Positions 37,083-56,315 of a DNA stretch of 64,000 nucleotides are shown in pieces. Source of the DNA: Vitrella brassicaformis CCMP3155 (taxonomy: Eukaryota; Protista; Chromerida). How positions within the stretch are numbered: position 1 is the first letter of the stretch; each line of letters opens with the position of its first letter. The DNA lies in assembly GCA_001179505.1 (NCBI GenBank), contig CDMY01000426.1, forward strand, positions 14,694 to 78,693, given 5' to 3'. The notes under the pieces were generated by a model. That model did no database searches. It was not told where the DNA came from and saw only the letters and a program-made list of their open reading frames with translations. Both the position numbers and the translations under genes were made by a program.

Positions 37083-39290
37083 CTACCGTGTCGTTGTCCG
37101 CCCTCTCTGGCCCGCTCGAATCAACCGCCATCCGCAAACACGACTAATCTGACCACGCGCACACACACGTACACATCGAGAGGCAGCCGCATCCACACAG
37201 TCAGACCCGCCCGTATCGTACCTGACTTCATGCCAGCCAGTATGTCTGATCTCCTTCACTGTCACTGGGAAGCGTCCGATGCTCGAGCCGTCAGGAAAGG
37301 CGGCACGGATGGAGGGCAGGACAGCTCGACAGTACGCGAACAAACCAAAAAAGGAGATGTCCACAGTCTGCAGCCCGGGGAAGAGGCTGAAGAGGGCCGA
37401 CAGGAGGGTGGATGTGAAAACGGCACGGATGCGACTGCCAGCATCCTCCACAGACACTGAACACACAAGTAGACGAGACAGCAATGGACAAGAGATATGG
37501 ATCGCACGATTGTCTTTGCAAACTCACTCTCATCTAAATCGAACTTGAAACACAGGTTGTCTATCATCGGCAGATTGGTCAGGCCGGCAGCAGCTACCAC
37601 GATCTCCTCCGTCCCCAGCTCCCCTGGGTCAATCGACACCTGTCGCACAACCCTCCCGCCCCCCAGCCCACCCAGCACGCCCAGCGCATCAACGGCAGGC
37701 GGGCCCAATGTTTCGACCTTGGCAACATGATTGGCCAGTTTGTCAGCCAGGAGACGACCGGCACTCACACCCAACCTGTCGTGGATGAGCAGGGTAGTTG
37801 CCCTTGGGAGTGGCTGGAGGTGCTCGATGATGGTGGGCTGAGGCGAGGGGGTGTGGGATGGGGGCGGCTGCTGGAAACTGGCCTGCACGAACACCGCCGC
37901 AGCGCGATCGAATGAGAGGCTGGAGGCGACGTCGACGGCCGCATCGCTGGGGCTGTCGACGGGGTGGGTGAGGTCATGCTGAGTGATGGTGTAGAACACG
38001 CGTGAGGTCTGGCGCGCGAGGTGCTGCATGATGGTCTTGAAGAGGGGGGAGGGATTGGGGGGGAAATCGTCGCTGTTGAAGATGGACAACTCGAAACTAC
38101 CCACAATCGAGTTCTCGAATATGACTGGTGCGTCGGGTCGGCAGCATGCCCTGTGCAGCGACTCCACCGACTGCATGAGGGGAAGGACACTGCTGTAGAC
38201 AGAGTAGAAGCCCATCCGCAGGGTGAGCTGGGTGAGCGACTGGCGGCATCCACGCGACCACAGCGCTGCCTGAAAGGCACACATGATCGAGACCATGAGA
38301 CAGCAACATATACGTCATCCTTCATATGTATCGGTAGCTAACCCGCAGTCGGTCCACCGCTGCACGAGGGTGGGCAAAATCGCCGCCTAGAAGGACCGTG
38401 CCTATGCATTCCAGACGTGCCAGGGGCCCCGGCTGCCCGGCCACTGCCACCGGCATGCGCTCAAACGCCGCCGCCCACTCGCCATCCTCAAACGTCCCAT
38501 CCACACGCCGCAGCGACTGGGACGAGCCGACGAGCTGTCCCACGGCACTCACACCCCACCCCTACTGGGCAAGGCGCTGGAGTGACGGCATCAGCCACCC
38601 TCTGCTGGCCAGACCGGAATGAGCTAAAGTGACGCCGGTGACAGTCTCGAGGGCATCAAGGGAGGGGGGCGGGTGCAGGGTGGACGGGAGGGGCGGTTGA
38701 TGTCGCTGCAGTGACTGCATCTCCCTGCTGCTTAGGTGGGCGCCCTCCAATAATTGGATTGTGTGTCCTCAGCGTGCCGCCCTGCATGCTGGCTGCCCGG
38801 CGGCCGGCAATGTACCCCTCGATCATGGCTATGAAGACGTCGATGCACCAGAGGGCGGCATTCATGGGATAGCGCAAGACGATAGCTGCCAGCCGTGTAA
38901 GCCGGGCCGCCCATTTGGTGACCAGATCCAGAGGGACACGCTGCCAGATGCGCCGCTCGGCCGCGCCACTGCTGTCGATGGTGACGGTGTGATGCTTCGG
39001 CAGTGAGTGCTCCCATGTGTTGCCGGACAGCTGGACGAGTAGACAGAGGGGGAGGAAGGCCGTGATGCAGGTGAGCAGACCCGGCTGCACAAAACGAACA
39101 CAAACAGCGACAGTGAGCCATCGCCCGTCCATTGTTGTGTGCGTGATTTCCTCACCGTGTCTGAGATCTTCTGCCTCAGTTCCCTCTCCCTCTCCTCTCT
39201 CTGTGCCCGTCGCCGCCCTTGGTCGCTCGCAGCACCAGGAGTACCAGCAGCAGAAGATGACGGCTCGGCGGTGCGGAATCGATGGGCCTA
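37083..39290 (-). pseudogene. Expanded-family hypothetical gene (paralogue of 52569-54878) with one frameshift and one in-frame stop
   Basis: Exon PGLLTCITAFLPLCLLVQL...GGTLRT shifts frame at the CA run at 38760-38766 into IQLLEGAHLSSREM. In-frame TAG at 38562-38564 (AQ*GWGVSAVGQL). The rest is open in ORFs 38322..38552, 37262..38296 and 37083..37484. Ends approximate. Confidence 0.75.
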
Positions 39291-48500: not shown

Positions 48501-50270
48501 CCACAGCTGCACCACTCACATACACACACACACACACACACAGGGTGCATCGGTGCTCTCGGCGCGTGAGATCGTGTGTGTGTGTTCTTTCTCTGCGCTG
48601 ACCTTGTATGTGAATCCTGAAGGCATGGCGTGGTCCATCACCTGCCCGTTGTATATAGGCGTCGCCCCGATGCACCTGCATAGCACGGATCCGTGTGCAT
48701 CGATTGATAACACAGTTGAGTTTCTCTCTCTCTCGCGCACCCCATTTGGCATGAGGGCTCGGTGGCAGTCTCGTCAGGTGTGGTGTTGAGGTCGAACAGC
48801 TCTATGAGTATCTGGAAGGGGCCGCTGATGAACCTGAAGGTCGACCGGAGGAAGAACCGCACGAACCGGTGCAACCTGATGACACATACACGCAAACACA
48901 CACACAAACAGAGAGAGAGAGGGACGTGGTCTTGTTGTGGTGTTGCAGCCGTGTGTCGGTATACCTCGGGGGCACGTCGACGACGAGTGACCACACCTCC
49001 TGATGAACACAAGTACAGACGTCCATGTGTGGAGGCGTGTGTGTCACGGCGGCCTCCCATTGATCATTTTGAAAGCTCACTCTCTTGAAAGGGTTCCACA
49101 CTCGGTCATGCGTGAAGACGTACACGTACGGCTTGGCTGCATGAACCATACAGAGACCATAAAAGGGCATGCACACGAGTGTGCGCGTGTCCCTGTGTGT
49201 GTTACATGGCGGGTTGCTATCGTGGAAGCCCTTGTCGTCGAGGGTGATCTTCTCGCGCTTGACGGGCAGCCCTGAAGTGCCCGGACAAGAACTGGGGATA
49301 TGGTAAGGCATCCCTGACCACACACAGACATGGAAAGAGAGTGACATCCACCCATCGACGATTGAGAATGCGGCTGCCGACTCACTCCAGATAGCCACGA
49401 CAGTTATGTCGACGCGTACAGGGAAGCAGGATGACTTCCGCCTGGCAGACACACGCGAATGAATGAATGGATGAATGCATGAGTCGGACTGCTTCGGGGT
49501 CGTTACCATCTTGCATCTGCCCCTGGCTCGTCCTGAGCAAGGTCCGCAGCTGACAGACAGACACAAGAAACAAGAACCGCCGACCGATCGATCACCCATT
49601 CACCCTCCCCGCCTCCCTGTGTGCCTCCTTTCTTACTGATTTTGAACACGAGGCGATAGTCCTCCCCCTTGTTGTCAATATCCCCCGTCAGGTAGCACTT
49701 GGCGTTGTCCCCCCCTGCCCCCGGCATCTGGGTGCCCCACAGGACCGGCTTGGCGTACTCGCCCGACACGTGGTTCTCGCTGCCCTTGTAGAGGTCCACC
49801 TTGACCTCGGCCAGTGAGTCGCGGTGCACCTCGACTGATGCCGTGATGATGGAGCGCTTCTTGACCTTGAATGCCAGGGTGTGCTCGTGGACGTCGTCGG
49901 GGATGCCGAATACGTCACCCAGGTAGACCTCGCCTGAAGAAAGAAAGAAACAGACGGACGGGCAGCAGATGGATGTATGTGTGATGGGAGCATGCACTCA
50001 GTGCGTGCGTGCGAGAGTACCGTTGTATTGGAGGTATCCAATTGAGTCGAAAGTAGATGGGATGGGGTGGTACTTGCACGACTTGGGGTTGTACTTCTCC
50101 GCTGCTTGATTCAGCTCTGCATCGCTCACATCGCCATGGCAAACCCCGATGAACACTGCCGACAGCAGCAACAGCAGCATCGCAGAGGCAACACCCATGA
50201 CGGATCTCTCTGGTGCATCCCGCCATCTTCGTCGCTTCGCCCTTGGAGTGCTCGCCTCCATCAATTCCAT
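41268..50270 (-). CDS. Very large multi-exon type I membrane protein with extended ectodomain, Pro-rich stalk, EGF-like Cys motif, one TM and acidic cytosolic tail
   Basis: N-terminal hydrophobic segment VASAMLLLLLSAVFIGVCHG. Dozens of minus-strand exons with GT-AG boundaries. Juxtamembrane HCGEGFVINPVTGMCDP, TM GVLGWSFVLSVVAILLLIAW, and tail YRYTPV...EENFGLVDRDDDDDDD. Not every exon was checked for phase. Confidence 0.72.
44953..45027. repeat. Three copies of ACACACAAGTGCGTGTGTGT inside intron 44927-45057
   Basis: Copies at 44953-44972, 44983-45002 and 45008-45027. Confidence 0.85.
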
Positions 50271-50537
50271 CACCAGCAGCGCCTGTATGCACGTCAATCA
50301 AGGATGCTCTCTCGATGTGCTTGTTCCATAGCTAAGATGAATGGCTGGCGGTGACGCTGGCATCATGCTCATCTCAATTGACATCGGTTTCATTTGCGAG
50401 CTCACGAAAAACGATCGGGAGAGAAGGCGAGGAAGACAGAGAAAAGGGTAGACAGAAGAGGGCGCTTTACTCCCTTGTCTTTCGCACGGTGCAGGTGCTT
50501 GCCTTGGCGAGAAGTGAAGAAGAGAACAACAGAAGCG

Positions 50538-52253
50538 ATGAGTGACTCAGATGCTGCCGCTTCTTCGTCAACGAAGGCGTCGCACAGCGTCAATGTCAAG
50601 GCCTCTGCGCGACAGTTCATCCAGCGGTTCATCGGAACTGTAGGCCACGAAGCAAAATCCGCTTGCCAAAACAGATGCATGGCACTCATCATTCCTCTTG
50701 TGTGTGCTGTTGTGTGAACGTGTGTGTGCGTTCAGCCTGTGGCTGGTAGGACGGACGTCGAGTCGACGCTCGAGCCGGGCCTGCGCGCCACCGTCCGCAG
50801 AGGCGAGCAGCAGCCCATCCCGCTGACCTCCCCGAGTGGCAACCCGACCGGTGAGTCGGTCGCACCCGGGGACAAGGTCGTGGTCTTCGAGACCGTCCAG
50901 AAAGGCCTGGTTGCGGTGGACCCCCACAATCGGCGCTGGGGACGGCCCGTCGACCACGTGGTGGGCTACGCCCCTCGGGCTGCGTTCGCCTTGCCCGCGC
51001 CTGACGGACTGCTGGGGAGCGTGAGGTTCCCGGTGTCTCACAAGACCAGCTGGACCCGGCTGCGAGAGGTGAACGTGGCCATGCTCAGAGCCCCCAGGCA
51101 GCGGCTGTCCGGCGACTGCTCCCTCCTCGCCGCCGTGCGGGCAGCGCAAGCTGCGGCCCCAGACCGCATCTACGACATGGTTACGCTCATAGACCGCCAA
51201 TGCGCCACGGGCCCCCAGCGAGCCAAGGTCCGCTATTTCTCAAAGGATCGCCACGGGCGGTTTCAGCCGGAAGAGGTGACGGTCACCACTCGCCGCCTCC
51301 GCGCCCAGATCCCCTGCTTGCCCCACATGATGCGACCCCGCTTCGGGGCCACGGTGGAGGGACAGGTCGCGGAGATCGGCTGGCCGCTGCTGGGACGGCC
51401 CAGACATGAGCTGGGCTGGATGCTCATCGAGAAGGCCCGGGCCAAGACCATGGCGGATGGGACCTGGAACGCGCTCGCCAACGAGGGGCAGGGAGTCGTC
51501 GAGACCTTCGAGTGGCTGCTGGGGTGGCGTACCGAGACTATCTCTCTCCCCAAGGACCGGCCCCTCACCGATCTCTACGAGGAGATCCGCGCCGCGTATG
51601 CCCGGGGGGAGCCGGTGGTGGTGGTGGCTGGAAACGACAAGTACTGCCACGCCTATCCGCTGCTCCGCATCTCCGGAGGGGGCCGGGCGGTCCTGGGGAC
51701 CGGCCATTGGTACAAGTCGCGCAAGAGTCCAAGTCGCGAGGTAATCGCCAAGCTTCGGCTCGACGGCAAGCGGGATTTCTTTGGGCCCCCCGTCGGCATC
51801 GTTAATGGTATGCTTATCCTTGGGATCACGATCGCCCGCCGGGAATACCTCACGGCCCCTCCCATCATCCACGCGTCGTGGTATGTGAGTTGACTCACTC
51901 GCACGACAGCAGCCATGACACATATACAGTGATCCCGCTTATGTGTGCAGATTTTCCACTTCGTCTGGAGATCCCACTGCAGCTCCCTGCTCGATTGGAG
52001 CCGCATCATATCGACGTGCACTGGTGCAGCGCGGATGTGTTGGGCGGCTCTCATTCCTATGCGTGCCTTCGAGTTTATTGATGGTGACCTTGCGGAAGGC
52101 GAAAACTCTGCTGGGAGGGCCGGTCAGGAGCGGCTGTGCCAGAGGATGGACATTGAATGGATGTCCCAGAGAGACATACCGGCAAGGGATGACATTGCAT
52201 TGCGCGCGAGAGACGACCTCATGCTCAAGCGGCTGGATGACAGATCAGTGTGA
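50538..52253 (+). CDS. Chimeric gene: family-type exon 1 fused to an intronless calpain-like (peptidase C2 / CysPc) cysteine protease domain
   Basis: Exon 1 at 50538-50639 and a phase-0 intron at 50640-50735 are in frame with ORF 50724..51893. Motifs QRLSGDCSLLAA (Cys 51117), WMLIEKARAK...WNAL...ETFEWLLG and HAY (His 51648). A possible last exon (51951-52253) follows donor GTGAGT at 51885 and is uncertain. Confidence 0.7.
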
Positions 52254-52568
52254 CTTTGCTGTTGCGTATGATGGTTGACAGGGAGGCATGTATCATGCAT
52301 CGTACATGGGACTTACGTGAAGGGTTGCCATTGGGTCGATGTGAATAGTGGTGGATTCACTGATTCATTCGTTGATTGTCCTGACCCATGTGAACTACTG
52401 GACAAGCAAGTGTAGATAGAAAAACGAATGCACTCAAAAGAAGGAGCGGTTCAGTGACAGGATCCTCCGGTTACAGACACGAGTCTCGTAAACACAATAA
52501 CCAACCAACCAGGAGCCGTTTGCACAGTTCAGCCTTGCCTTTTGAGAGAGAAGAGAGCTAGCATAGCA

Positions 52569-54878
52569 ATGAGCGAGGCGGCTGCTTCTTCGTCGACCAA
52601 GACATCCCACAGCGTCGATCTCGATGCCTTTGCGCGGCAGTTCACCGGAATTGTAGGCTGCAAAGCACAAAGCGAAAGCCGCCTGCGCCACACGGTGCTC
52701 GTCATTTCTCTTGTGTGTGGTTACGTTCGTTCAGCCGGCCATCATCGGCTGCGTCTTCTCGTTCCTGTCGCTCCATTTGATGGCGCAGCTGCCCAAGCGG
52801 CTGTGGCGCCACGTCGGCGCACGTGTCACACGCCTGTTCATCAACACCTGCAACGGGGCGGAGCGCCGTTTCTGGTGCGGGCTGTCCTTCGACGCTGCCT
52901 TCAGCTTCGGGCGGCTGCTGACGCAGATCGAGTGCATCGTCATCCGGTTCCCTAGTGGCAGCTACGTCAGAATACGCATCCCACCCAGCTCGTGCGGGCG
53001 GACATCTTCAGGACCGTCGATTCGCTACTCGAGAATTCTTATTCGCCGAGGGGCCGACATTGTGACAGCGTTGGTGGAAGGGCACTGCGACCGGCAGAGA
53101 GGTCAGGCGGCACGAAGCACACTCGAGTCAATCGAGTTCAGCACCTCCCAGTTGAGGCTGAGCCTCGACGATGATGAGTACGACCAGGCCGAGTCTGTGT
53201 GGCAGCATGCGGCCCTCGCCCCTCCCCTCGACACGCCCCCTACTCTGCATTCCCTCACATCCATCTCGGGCTTCGGCGAGCATGACTTTATGCCAGCGTC
53301 TTTCTACCGCCAGGATCGACATTGGCAGCTTCCGTCCCTCCAGAGACTGCAAACACTGGCAGACCGCCCTTCAGACAGGGATGGGCAGCCGTGTTGGGGC
53401 GTGCCGCGGTTGCTGCTGCGGGCGTGTCGGAGCCTGCGGGAGGTGGATATGGCGATGCCGCCTGGTCATGTGGCCGAGGCCTTGGCGGAGATACCTATAG
53501 CACAGGATGGGCAGCCTGGCCCCCTGTCGCAGCTGCAGGATATCGGCCCTCTCATCTGCATGCATCACCATCCTGTCGATGTCATCACTGCCGGGTACAA
53601 CGCCGGATGCACTATCATTCCACCGGACGAGTGGGCGGCGGGGGTGGGGCGTCTGCAGGTATGCGCGTACAGAAGAAACAAAGCAGAGAGGACCGTGTGT
53701 GTCTTTGTACGATGTTTCTCGTCACCGCCGTTTGTCGTTTGTAGGGCGTGCTTGTCGCTCGGGGGTGCCGTTCGATCAAGAGCGTCACTGTCGACCTTGG
53801 ATGGCATGAGCCCGTCGACAGCAGCATGTTCGAAGCGCTGTCGGCCATCGAGGCCTTCACACGCACAGTGTGTGAGCGCGCCAGCGTCCCCGTCCACATA
53901 TATCGACATCCAGACAGGGGAGTCCTTTCCGGATCTGGACCCCCTTGATCCAGACGACCGCCTGCTCTTCGACCTCTCCCTCCTCTGCGACGTGCCCGTC
54001 CACCCCGTCGCCTCTCCCTTCGTCCGGAGGCACCTTCTCCAGATGGCGGCAGACGTGTCGAAGGTGTCCTTCCTCATCCAACCACAGCATGTGACGGCTC
54101 CCCTTGACACACCCACCCCCGCTGCCAAGGCCCTCGCACAGGCCATGAGGTTCCCCAAAGCGACCAGTGTCAAGGTCATCGACTTCCCAGATATGGAGGA
54201 GCTCGAGGCCGACACGCCGCCGCCCGACCCGCTCGTGATCGACGAGCTGCCTGACGCTGCCTTTCCCACGGCATCGCGCCTCACGATTGGCAGGAGCTTG
54301 GGCAGCGTCATAGAGCGTAAGCTGGTGACCAAGATGCCTGTTCTGGCAAAGATCGAGATCGGTGGCTCATGGGAACTTGTCGAGACGAGTGAGGGGGTAC
54401 CAGAGGCGGATGCGGTGAGGGTGCTGGAAGCAGTGGGTGCGGACAGGCACCTGGATCTCTTTCGTGTTGATGACTCTTGCTTTGTCACGGGTGTGGGTGA
54501 GGGCGGCGTGACGTGGGGCGAGAGGACTGACGAGCTGCCCAGCATGGAGAAGCTGGAGCTTAGTGTGGAAGGTGAACCGCACTGCACCCAAACTGCACAT
54601 TCTGCATGTCATCTCTCTCTGTTTGGGTGCGTGCAGTTCCCGAGCATCTGGCTGACAGCGATGCTGCTGGTGAGTTTGGCATTACCTGCGTCAGGTCGCT
54701 GCTCAAGATTCGCGGCCTCAAGGAACTCGCCTTAGAGCCGCGCCCCTGGAGCGCCTTCGCGCGGCTCGTGCAGGAGAGGAGACATGGGGACAGCATCGAG
54801 GGCGTCCCGGGCCGATTCGTCATAGGGTGGCGCAGGGGAGGCAGCCTTGTGCTCAAGCCTCAACATGAAGACACCTGA
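52569..54878 (+). pseudogene. Expanded-family hypothetical gene (4 exons) with a frameshift in exon 3 when normally spliced
   Basis: Exon 1 at 52569-52652. Exon 2 starts at 52735 (PAIIGCVFSFL). Intron 53659-53744 leads to GVLVARGCRSIKSV...VPVH, and the frame changes at ATATAT 53898-53903 to IDIQTGESFPD. Last exon ends ...LVLKPQHEDT* at 54878. Confidence 0.65.
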
Positions 54879-55180
54879 TGGAGGGAGGACGACATATATG
54901 TCGATGCGACGACTGTGCTTCTGTTTCTTGCAATGGTATTGTGTGTATTGTGCGTATGTCGTTTCAGGTGGTCCACTGCTCAGCTGGCCGAGCTCTTTGC
55001 AGTCTAGACCAGTGCATTGATTGTGTGGCGAACATTCATTCATTCATTCATGGATTCGTTGATTGTCCTGACCCGTACGTGCGAACATCAATGCGTCTCT
55101 GCAGCTGCTGTGTATCCATAGACACACTCACTCCTAAGTAAGTACTCACGTGAGTCAGTCCATAAATGCAGCCAATCATT

Positions 55181-55413
55181 CACCCAGCCACCGCCGAGCC
55201 ACCCGTGTGTTGCTTCACGAATCAGCCGCATTAGGCACACGGTCAGACGAAGGACAAGGTTGGAGAGATAAAAGCCTGGATGGACACCCTCCATCACCCA
55301 GCCACCGCCCAGCCACCCGTGTGTTGCTTCACGAATCAGCCGCATTAGTCACACGGTCAGACGAAGGACAAGGTTGGAGAGATAAAAGCCTGGATGGACA
55401 CCCTCCATCACCC
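55181..55413. repeat. Tandem repeat, 114-bp unit x2 plus the start of a third
   Basis: Units at 55181-55294 and 55295-55408, two mismatches. CACCC restarts at 55409. Confidence 0.92.
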
Positions 55414-56315
55414 GCACCAACCAACACATGCACACACACACAGACAGACAGACACAAACCGATCATTGTGTGTGTGGCTGGCTGGCTGGCTGGCTGGGGA
55501 TAACGTGAAAAACTGCCCGCACGCCTTCCTCGCTGTATATGTTACTTCAGTCAAATGAATGAATGAATTGATATCACATCACGGTCACGAAAATGAATAG
55601 AAAAGGGCTCACCCACCGGTGGATGCGCCCTCCCTCTCTCGCCCACAGCAGGCTGCTGTCTGTGACTTGGATAGGTAGGCATTAGACAGACACACACGAC
55701 ATGAATGAGCAGAGAGACAGACGGACAGACAGAGACGCACGAACACATGAATGGGTAGATAGCCACGTGGGCAGGCAGGCAGGCTGGCAGGCAGACCGAC
55801 ACGAACGGTTAGATAAACGGACGTGCATACGCCTCAGTCATGATGTGTGTGCACATTCAGATATACAGACACACAACACGATGTGGCGTTGCTTGCTACA
55901 TCTACAGGGGAGACAAGGAGAGAGGGAGAGAGAGAGAGACGACACGTGCCATCCCTCAGCCATCCAGAGGCCTTGTCTGCCCGAATGCCGTTACAGAGCC
56001 ATGCAATAACAAGGATGAGGATGATAAAGTACACACACATACCATACACAGACATCCAGCCATTCGCACGTTCGTATCTACGCGCGCCACCCCAGCAGCC
56101 AGGCAGCCATGCCACCCATGCCACCCGACCGACCGCCATCCACCAAAATGATCATAAAAGACACCTAGCGGCAGAATTAAGACCGTACGCTCTTCTTGAC
56201 TATCGCCATTTCCATGTCTGCAGCCCGGCTCATAAAATTCCCGCTACGCGGCGATCCATCCATCCATCCATGTAGGTGAAAAAAGGAAACAGCGGCTGGC
56301 GTGCTCCCCTCTCTC

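Follow-up and report, generated by a model that had tools for sequence, protein, structure and literature searches.

A gene whose first exon belongs with that of its neighbor and whose second exon carries the motifs of a protease raises the questions of how the two parts came together, whether they are joined in a transcript, what the second part is and where it came from. Such a gene, here termed gene A, lies in a 64,000-nucleotide (nt) stretch of contig CDMY01000426.1 (positions 14,694-78,693, forward strand) of Vitrella brassicaformis CCMP3155, a member of the chromerids, which are photosynthetic relatives of apicomplexan parasites. The whole stretch is referred to as the window, and all coordinates are positions within it. 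Gene A spans 50538-52456 on the + strand with its ATG at 50538. An original prediction had described it as a calpain-like protease domain placed behind the first exon of the family to which the downstream gene, gene B, belongs, and proposed that after a tandem duplication the body of one copy was replaced by an imported domain. The results described here support with good confidence a different account, in which gene A is an expressed exon-shuffling chimera with an orphan, highly divergent calpain-like domain.

The 5' part of gene A is paralogous to the 5' part of gene B, whose ATG at 52569 lies 2 kb downstream of the start of gene A. The two copies, termed D1 and D2, share a block of ~220-260 bp and are ~75-80% identical. 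Similarity is clearest in exon 1, with 80% identity over 70 nt (50550-50619 against 52575-52644, E 3e-13), and continues into intron 1, where both genes have a GTAGGC donor and a CGTTCAG acceptor and share the core CTC[A/G]TCATT[C/T]CTCTTGTGTGTG, which matches at 20 of 22 nt and is equaled by none of 500 shuffles. The portion of the block in the 5' untranslated region (UTR), ~57 nt, is collinear but weak (50481-50517 against 52519-52556, equaled by 4 of 500 shuffles), and upstream of 50481 no further homology between the two genes is found. The predicted paralogy of exon 1, intron 1 and some 60 bp upstream is therefore confirmed. The suggestion that gene A stands under the promoter of the family is not supported because D1 begins downstream of the transcript 5' end, the homology starting at 50481 and the transcript contigs at 50426-50431. 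Past the intron 1 acceptor the exon 2 starts of the two genes show no similarity, 201 of 500 shuffles scoring as well, in agreement with the predicted switch to an unrelated exon at this point, and the breakpoints of the chimera are mapped to within a few nucleotides. A unique segment of 1.7 kb (50738-52518) lies between D1 and D2, which form its flanking direct repeats. We infer that the duplication is old because the copies are only ~75-80% identical. In the 72.7-Mb genome assembly (1064 contigs) the exon 1 peptide occurs in genes A and B only.

The joining of the two parts was examined with contigs of four public runs placed on 50300-55100 and with a separate Joint Genome Institute (JGI) transcriptome contig, L001. 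Runs X3 and X5, from two different studies, give unspliced DNA contigs identical in sequence to the window, and a misassembly, raised beforehand as a possible flaw, is excluded because these contigs are collinear with it. An RNA-derived contig of run X7 has joints at 50639|50736, 51880|51951, 52652|52735, 53656|53743 and 54569|54635, all with GT..AG introns. The first of these is the predicted junction of exon 1 with exon 2 and is in phase 0 and in frame. Gene A thus has a paralogous 5' module, an unrelated body and an in-frame spliced transcript, by which exon-shuffling chimeras are recognized. The second joint was predicted at 51884|51951 and lies instead at 51880|51951 in all three transcript assemblies (X1, X7 and L001). 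A TGA stop is made across this junction from 51879-51880 and 51951, the predicted protein has 34 + 381 = 415 residues with the C terminus ...PPIIHAS, and the stretch 51951-52253, originally taken as a coding third exon, is 3' UTR in every transcript seen. Tandem donors lie 4 nt apart at 51881-51888, namely GTATGT, which is used, and GTGAGT, which is found in no contig. The latter (51884|51885) would bring the 100-codon open reading frame (ORF) of 51951-52253 in frame and give a 517-residue protein; contigs drop rare variants, and a minor isoform using this donor may escape them. The ORF has mild codon periodicity, with a GC content at third codon positions (GC3) of 0.65, and shows no Pfam match and no relative in the genome. 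One X7 contig of 4275 nt spans 50426-55099 and includes gene A, a LINE-like piece (LINE, long interspersed nuclear element) and gene B, the five introns all being spliced out. This may reflect transcription that reads through from one gene to the next or an assembly that spans overlapping UTRs. In run X1 the stretch 52393-52553 is without coverage.

Exon 2 is single-copy in the genome and is composed of an N-terminal extension of ~115 residues without a match followed by a divergent calpain-like catalytic core, with 56 residues from the Trp325 column to the C terminus (residues are numbered within exon 2). The GC contents of its three codon positions are 0.685, 0.514 and 0.835, the third being 0.81-0.85 in all three thirds of the exon, and this coding composition accounts for a GC island of 0.68 at the locus. 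The exons of gene A were searched separately and were joined solely for the reading-frame check. Standard searches of exon 2 yielded little. A word search finds the protein itself only, as does phmmer over 1.84 billion representative proteins, in which the sole other match at E ≤ 1e-3 is an artefact: P0002 (E 7.7e-4), whose sequence is a 12-fold repeat, matches residues 24-65 by summed scores and was rejected as spurious. Domain III (PF01067) and EF-hand or other calcium-binding modules are not found, and Pfam yields nothing beyond noise for the exon.

Targeted comparisons with calpains gave a different outcome. The hallmark motifs named in the original prediction are present as QRLSGDCSLLAA, GWMLIEKARAK and CHAY. 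A hidden Markov model (HMM) built from 71 domains out of 80 bacterial calpain-like loci scores exon 2 at 36.0 bits (E 2.1e-13), with a maximum of 4.1 bits among 3000 shuffles, and random subsets of 26 bacterial sequences give 27-36 bits. Alignment of exon 2 with the bacterial alignment by hhalign has a probability of 96.7% (E 3.6e-10) over 316 columns. On a profile of 26 eukaryotic calpain cores exon 2 scores 4.4 bits (E 8e-4 for a single comparison), which none of 3000 shuffles equals, and hhalign against eukaryotic calpains gives 79% (P 1.5e-5), or 60.8% (P 8e-5) with a 15-sequence alignment. In an alignment of 61 rows the invariant columns are Gln122, Gly126, Cys128, Glu232, Ala234 and His305, and exon 2 keeps all six. 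Language-model features of residues 100-345 reach 0.93-0.94 to PF00648 clusters, which make up 29 of 30 matches, and are taken as a lead rather than a test. In sequence terms, exon 2 belongs as a very divergent member to the superfamily of calpain (clan CA, family C2-like) catalytic cores, and this homology is regarded as established because the targeted profile tests are positive, although membership of PF00648 fails.

Several results weigh against the reading of gene A as an expressed chimera with a calpain-like domain. A match to the Peptidase_C2 profile had been set beforehand as the test of calpain identity, and PF00648 matches neither the whole of exon 2 nor its sub-regions in hmmscan at E ≤ 10, its gathering score of 23.8 bits not being reached; a genome-wide PF00648 scan at E ≤ 10 gives 29 matches elsewhere, these being the canonical calpains of the host, and this locus is not among them. 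Exon 2 likewise has no NCBIfam family and no sequence match in the PDB. An AlphaFold (AF2) model made with the 61-row multiple sequence alignment has a mean predicted local distance difference test (pLDDT) score of 72 and a predicted template modeling (pTM) score of 0.74, and Foldseek places calpain protease cores in all of its top 38 PDB matches (E from 2e-7, TM 0.5-0.58); this agrees with calpain homology, but the model is not independent evidence because the alignment consists of calpain-family rows, and the model from the single sequence (pLDDT 35) is unusable. The calpain site consists of a Gln together with a Cys, His and Asn triad in which Asp can replace Asn, and a few homologues are without the Asn (PMC4631099). 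In exon 2 the family Asn-Pro-Trp columns, at least 90% conserved, hold Gly323-His324-Trp325; peptidase activity appears doubtful and is uncertain because the catalytic Asn column holds Gly, and His324 might, as a hypothesis, stand in as the third residue. What remains of the original assignment to calpain family C2 is the homology to the catalytic core with Gln, Cys and His aligned, and what is lost is the PF00648 match and the conserved Asn. An isoform that retains intron 1 exists beside the spliced form, and the contigs cannot tell which of them is dominant nor whether the fused protein is made. Finally, no orthologue of gene A was found by which purifying selection could be shown.

Two readings turn on these points. 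If the intron 1-retaining transcript dominated, the fusion would not be the main product, exon 1 would be an upstream ORF, and translation from the earliest in-frame ATG of exon 2, at 51081, would give a core-only protein of ~266 residues. L001 does keep intron 1 (it matches 50431-51880 and 51950-52456, with intron 2 out), in which case the exon 1 frame stops at TGA 50715-50717; in run X1, which has the 51880|51951 joint, one contig begins exactly at 50736, a break expected where both forms are present, and a product of 266 residues would be about as long as the short homologues of bacterial type (247-262 residues). However, the stretch 50736-51080 before this ATG is fully periodic as coding sequence (GC3 0.852) and the spliced form exists in phase 0, and we consider the internal start improbable. 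A transcribed relic, that is a decaying chimera with a dead protease whose frame stays open since GC-rich DNA has few stops, is a poorer prospect still. The Asn to Gly change, the extreme divergence without known relatives in the phmmer search, the antisense ORFs of 210-227 residues in the exon 2 stretch, which show GC-rich DNA staying open, and the neighboring gene B, frameshifted relative to its paralogues yet transcribed, are consistent with decay. It is countered by an open frame of 381 codons, expected by chance at ~2.5e-4 at this GC content (our estimate), by strong codon-position periodicity throughout exon 2 and by the family residues kept in all six invariant columns, those of Gln, Cys and His included.

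The source of the calpain-like segment was originally sought outside the host, with the protease domain imported by bacterial horizontal transfer or as cargo of a mobile element or retrocopy into a tandem family copy whose body it replaced. This is now judged unlikely. The domain is single-copy, is without domain III and differs from the canonical calpains of the host (PF00648 E down to 1e-43); its closest feature-space clusters are short bacterial calpain-like proteins, and a unique segment between direct repeats resembles an insertion. It also scores 36 bits on the bacterial profile and 4.4 on the eukaryotic one, but this gap may reflect a more permissive bacterial profile because eukaryotic calpains reach 137-200 bits on the bacterial HMM, on which true bacterial members score at least 164, and the HMM scores were rejected as a sign of bacterial affinity. 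No donor or parent copy of the exon was found in the genome or among the 1.84 billion representatives, and the 401 Actinomycetota genomes sampled gave one partial match, at 23.6 bits. In a calpain tree of 46 bacterial-labeled rows, one of them grouping with eukaryotes, together with 18 eukaryotic cores and the exon 2 query, the bacterial and eukaryotic groups separate with a Shimodaira-Hasegawa-like approximate likelihood ratio test (SH-aLRT) support of 96. The query lies on the backbone between them, its branch being 3.59 changes per site long, and in no donor clade. A branch with support 69 already has "query + eukaryotes" as one of its two sides, so that the phylogeny proposed as a check is uninformative. 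A comparison of GC3, proposed for a foreign signature, returns a host-like value, 0.835 falling within the 0.66-0.935 of host calpain exons (family exons have 0.76-0.81), and GC content was rejected as a sign of foreign origin. A retrocopy is unlikely because there is no parent copy and no visible poly(A) and because the spliced intron 2 follows just past the ORF, and the LINE-like fragment nearby comes with a target-site duplication of its own. As far as the sequence allows, the segment shows neither nesting in a donor clade nor foreign nearest relatives nor atypical composition, the features by which horizontal transfer is recognized. Its source could be a gene imported long ago and since ameliorated, or a gene of the host itself that evolves fast. 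A bolder version, to which we give little credence, takes the 1.7-kb segment as a foreign or unsampled-lineage gene of the calpain superfamily that was inserted with a ~220-bp flanking duplication and so gained at once a first exon, an intron and a start codon from the host, its product being an active Cys-His protease with His324 for Asn. If true, this would make a new C2-like subfamily and would show chromerids domesticating acquired ORFs via a spliced leader exon.

Among the sequences labeled as bacterial, calpain loci on short contigs of metagenome-assembled genomes (MAGs) assigned to Gammaproteobacteria, Bacilli, Clostridia and Mycoplasmatales (L042-L044 and L046) are 29-41% identical to eukaryotic calpains, and in the tree L046 is grouped with the eukaryotes. 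These MAG bins are likely to be contaminated by eukaryotic sequence.

For gene A as an exon-shuffling chimera two routes of formation can be proposed. A local duplication may have set a copy of the gene B 5' module upstream of a calpain-like ORF already resident there, or a 1.7-kb segment may have been inserted at the start of gene B exon 2 with a long flanking duplication. The product would be either a soluble cysteine peptidase whose activity is reduced or altered or a pseudo-protease that binds substrates. Where the family has its putative membrane anchor, it carries a short N-terminal tail rich in Ser and Ala. The tandem duplication of a whole gene followed by replacement of its body, as first envisaged, is not supported: the shared sequence amounts to 220-260 bp, both breakpoints would have to hit the block ends exactly, and support at the 3' end is absent. 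The sole 3' match between the genes, which might have indicated that the gene B 3' end is kept in gene A, is a 33-nt block (52355-52387 against 55042-55074), and it is not evidence of a whole-gene tandem duplicate because it is also found on contig C632 and is the edge of a dispersed repeat. A chimeric retrocopy made by LINE template switching, considered as the unique segment ends beside the LINE-like fragment, was rejected, the fragment having its own target-site duplication of 13-17 nt and the segment containing a spliced intron.

Comparison with known systems places gene A at some distance from each of them. The bacterial-type calpain homologues (family C2, single-domain; PMC4631099) provide the best profile match for exon 2 and resemble it in consisting of the core alone, without domain III or EF-hands, in the Gln...Cys...His order and in the QxxxGDCxxLAA, ELWxxLxEKAYA and HAY motifs. 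Exon 2 differs from them in its far lower score on their profile, in having Gly-His-Trp for Asn-Pro-Trp, in the large insertions that separate its Cys motif from the EKA helix and in the unmatched N-terminal extension, and it is eukaryotic and lies behind a spliced exon. With eukaryotic calpains, including those of the host (PF00648 on at least nine contigs), it shares the superfamily and probably the fold, and its WMLIEKAxAK helix is almost the same as in host calpain L004 (eight of nine residues); the lack of a PF00648 match and of domain III and the low score on the eukaryotic profile set it apart, and it did not arise by recent duplication of a host calpain. Homologues without Asn that are non-peptidases or variants, for instance one in Frankia sp. 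EUN1f as well as Caenorhabditis elegans F47F6.5 (PMC4631099), likewise keep Cys and His and not Asn, but they are recognizable family members by sequence, whereas exon 2 has a His beside the vacant Asn column. The closest parallels to the gene structure are the chimeras of Drosophila and rice formed by exon shuffling or partial duplication (PMC5460883 and PMC3673630), in which a duplicated 5' module (UTR, first exon and intron) is spliced to an unrelated body and a new transcript results. Gene A differs from these in that the partner is an orphan domain, the event is old (~20-25% block divergence) and the host is a chromerid.

Both the class of mechanism and the protein superfamily are already known, and gene A is not a surprise, but how far its domain has diverged, the changed active site and the mapped breakpoints make it a good case study. 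It offers a clean, transcript-verified gene birth by exon shuffling in a chromerid. A calpain core that is missed by curated profiles and by a scan of 1.84 billion proteins points to protease diversity left unnamed by routine annotation, and should the protein turn out to be active with Gly-His for Asn, active-site variation in clan CA peptidases would be wider. The coordinates of the features are collected in the table.

Table. Positions of gene A, of the duplicated blocks and of the adjacent repeat fragment in the window
Feature	Coordinates	Strand	Details
Gene A 5' UTR	50426-50537	+	transcript contigs begin at 50426 (X7) and 50431 (JGI L001)
Duplicated block D1	50481-50737	+	final ~57 nt of the 5' UTR plus exon 1, intron 1 and acceptor of gene A; paralogous to D2
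Gene A exon 1, coding part	50538-50639	+	34 codons, MSDSDAAASSSTKASHSVNVKASARQFIQRFIGT, ends in phase 0
Gene A intron 1	50640-50735	+	96 nt, GT..AG; spliced in X7 contig, retained in JGI L001
Gene A exon 2	50736-51880	+	1145 nt = 381 codons + 2 nt
Q-R-L-S-G-D-C	51099-51119	+	oxyanion-hole Gln is exon 2 residue 122; nucleophile Cys is residue 128, codon 51117-51119
Catalytic His in CHAY	51648-51650	+	exon 2 residue 305; invariant column of the 61-row alignment
Gly323-His324-Trp325	51702-51710	+	in the Asn-Pro-Trp columns of the family; Asn to Gly, Trp kept
Gene A intron 2	51881-51950	+	70 nt, GT..AG; removed in X1, X7 and L001
Gene A 3' UTR in transcripts seen	51951-52455	+	includes 100-codon ORF 51951-52253 and 33-nt block 52355-52387
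LINE-like repeat fragment	52456-52512	+	57 nt, 5'-truncated 3' end; target-site duplication 52443-52455 / 52513-52529
Duplicated block D2	52519-52736	+	gene B 5' UTR end, exon 1 (52569-52652), intron 1 (52653-52734)

Exon 2 of gene B fits normally into a large lineage-specific family. Genome-wide this family numbers at least 158 matching exons, often clustered, as on contigs C309, C1036 and C13 (loci L017-L027), and it is without a Pfam domain. In this family exon 2 always starts with the hydrophobic P-V-V-V-A-Y-V-F-S-F, more fully PVVVAYVFSF(V/L)SLHLVAALP, which looks like a membrane anchor, and the first exons differ among members, that of gene B preceding a family region at 52735-54878. Spliced as the RNA shows, gene B runs into a stop at 53946-53948 and has a product of 403 residues. 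Its family-conserved frame shifts between ~53900 and 53941 (in the region 53745-53950), where the paralogues stay in one frame, and DNA and RNA contigs agree with the window in this region. Gene B looks frameshifted, as a transcribed pseudogene or a gene with a truncated product. The paralogue at 39 kb with PGLLTCITAFL, also named in the original prediction, is present on the minus strand at 38388-39084 with its exon start at 39084. It is divergent and has different upstream exons, its matched part is interrupted by at least one in-frame stop, and it may be a pseudogene.

The LINE-like fragment between genes A and B is an independent insertion because it has its own target-site duplication. 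It belongs to a family of at least 126 candidate copies genome-wide with 88-95% identity (L035-L041), which have the common 3' end ...AACCAACCAACCA, (CCAA)n and a variable 5' truncation, 70 to >660 nt being shared between copies. The repeat has a depth of ~34-fold in the DNA runs and is abundant in the RNA run. A search of 49500-56000 against Rfam gave nothing, and the repeat has no Rfam match. Downstream of gene B a dispersed repeat at 55033-55300 is 91% identical over 273 nt to C632:16387-16655 and opens at 55033 with (CATT)n and the 21-nt block ATTCGTTGATTGTCCTGACCC, a block that is also present in the gene A 3' UTR. It is followed by tandem duplications at ~55150-55400.

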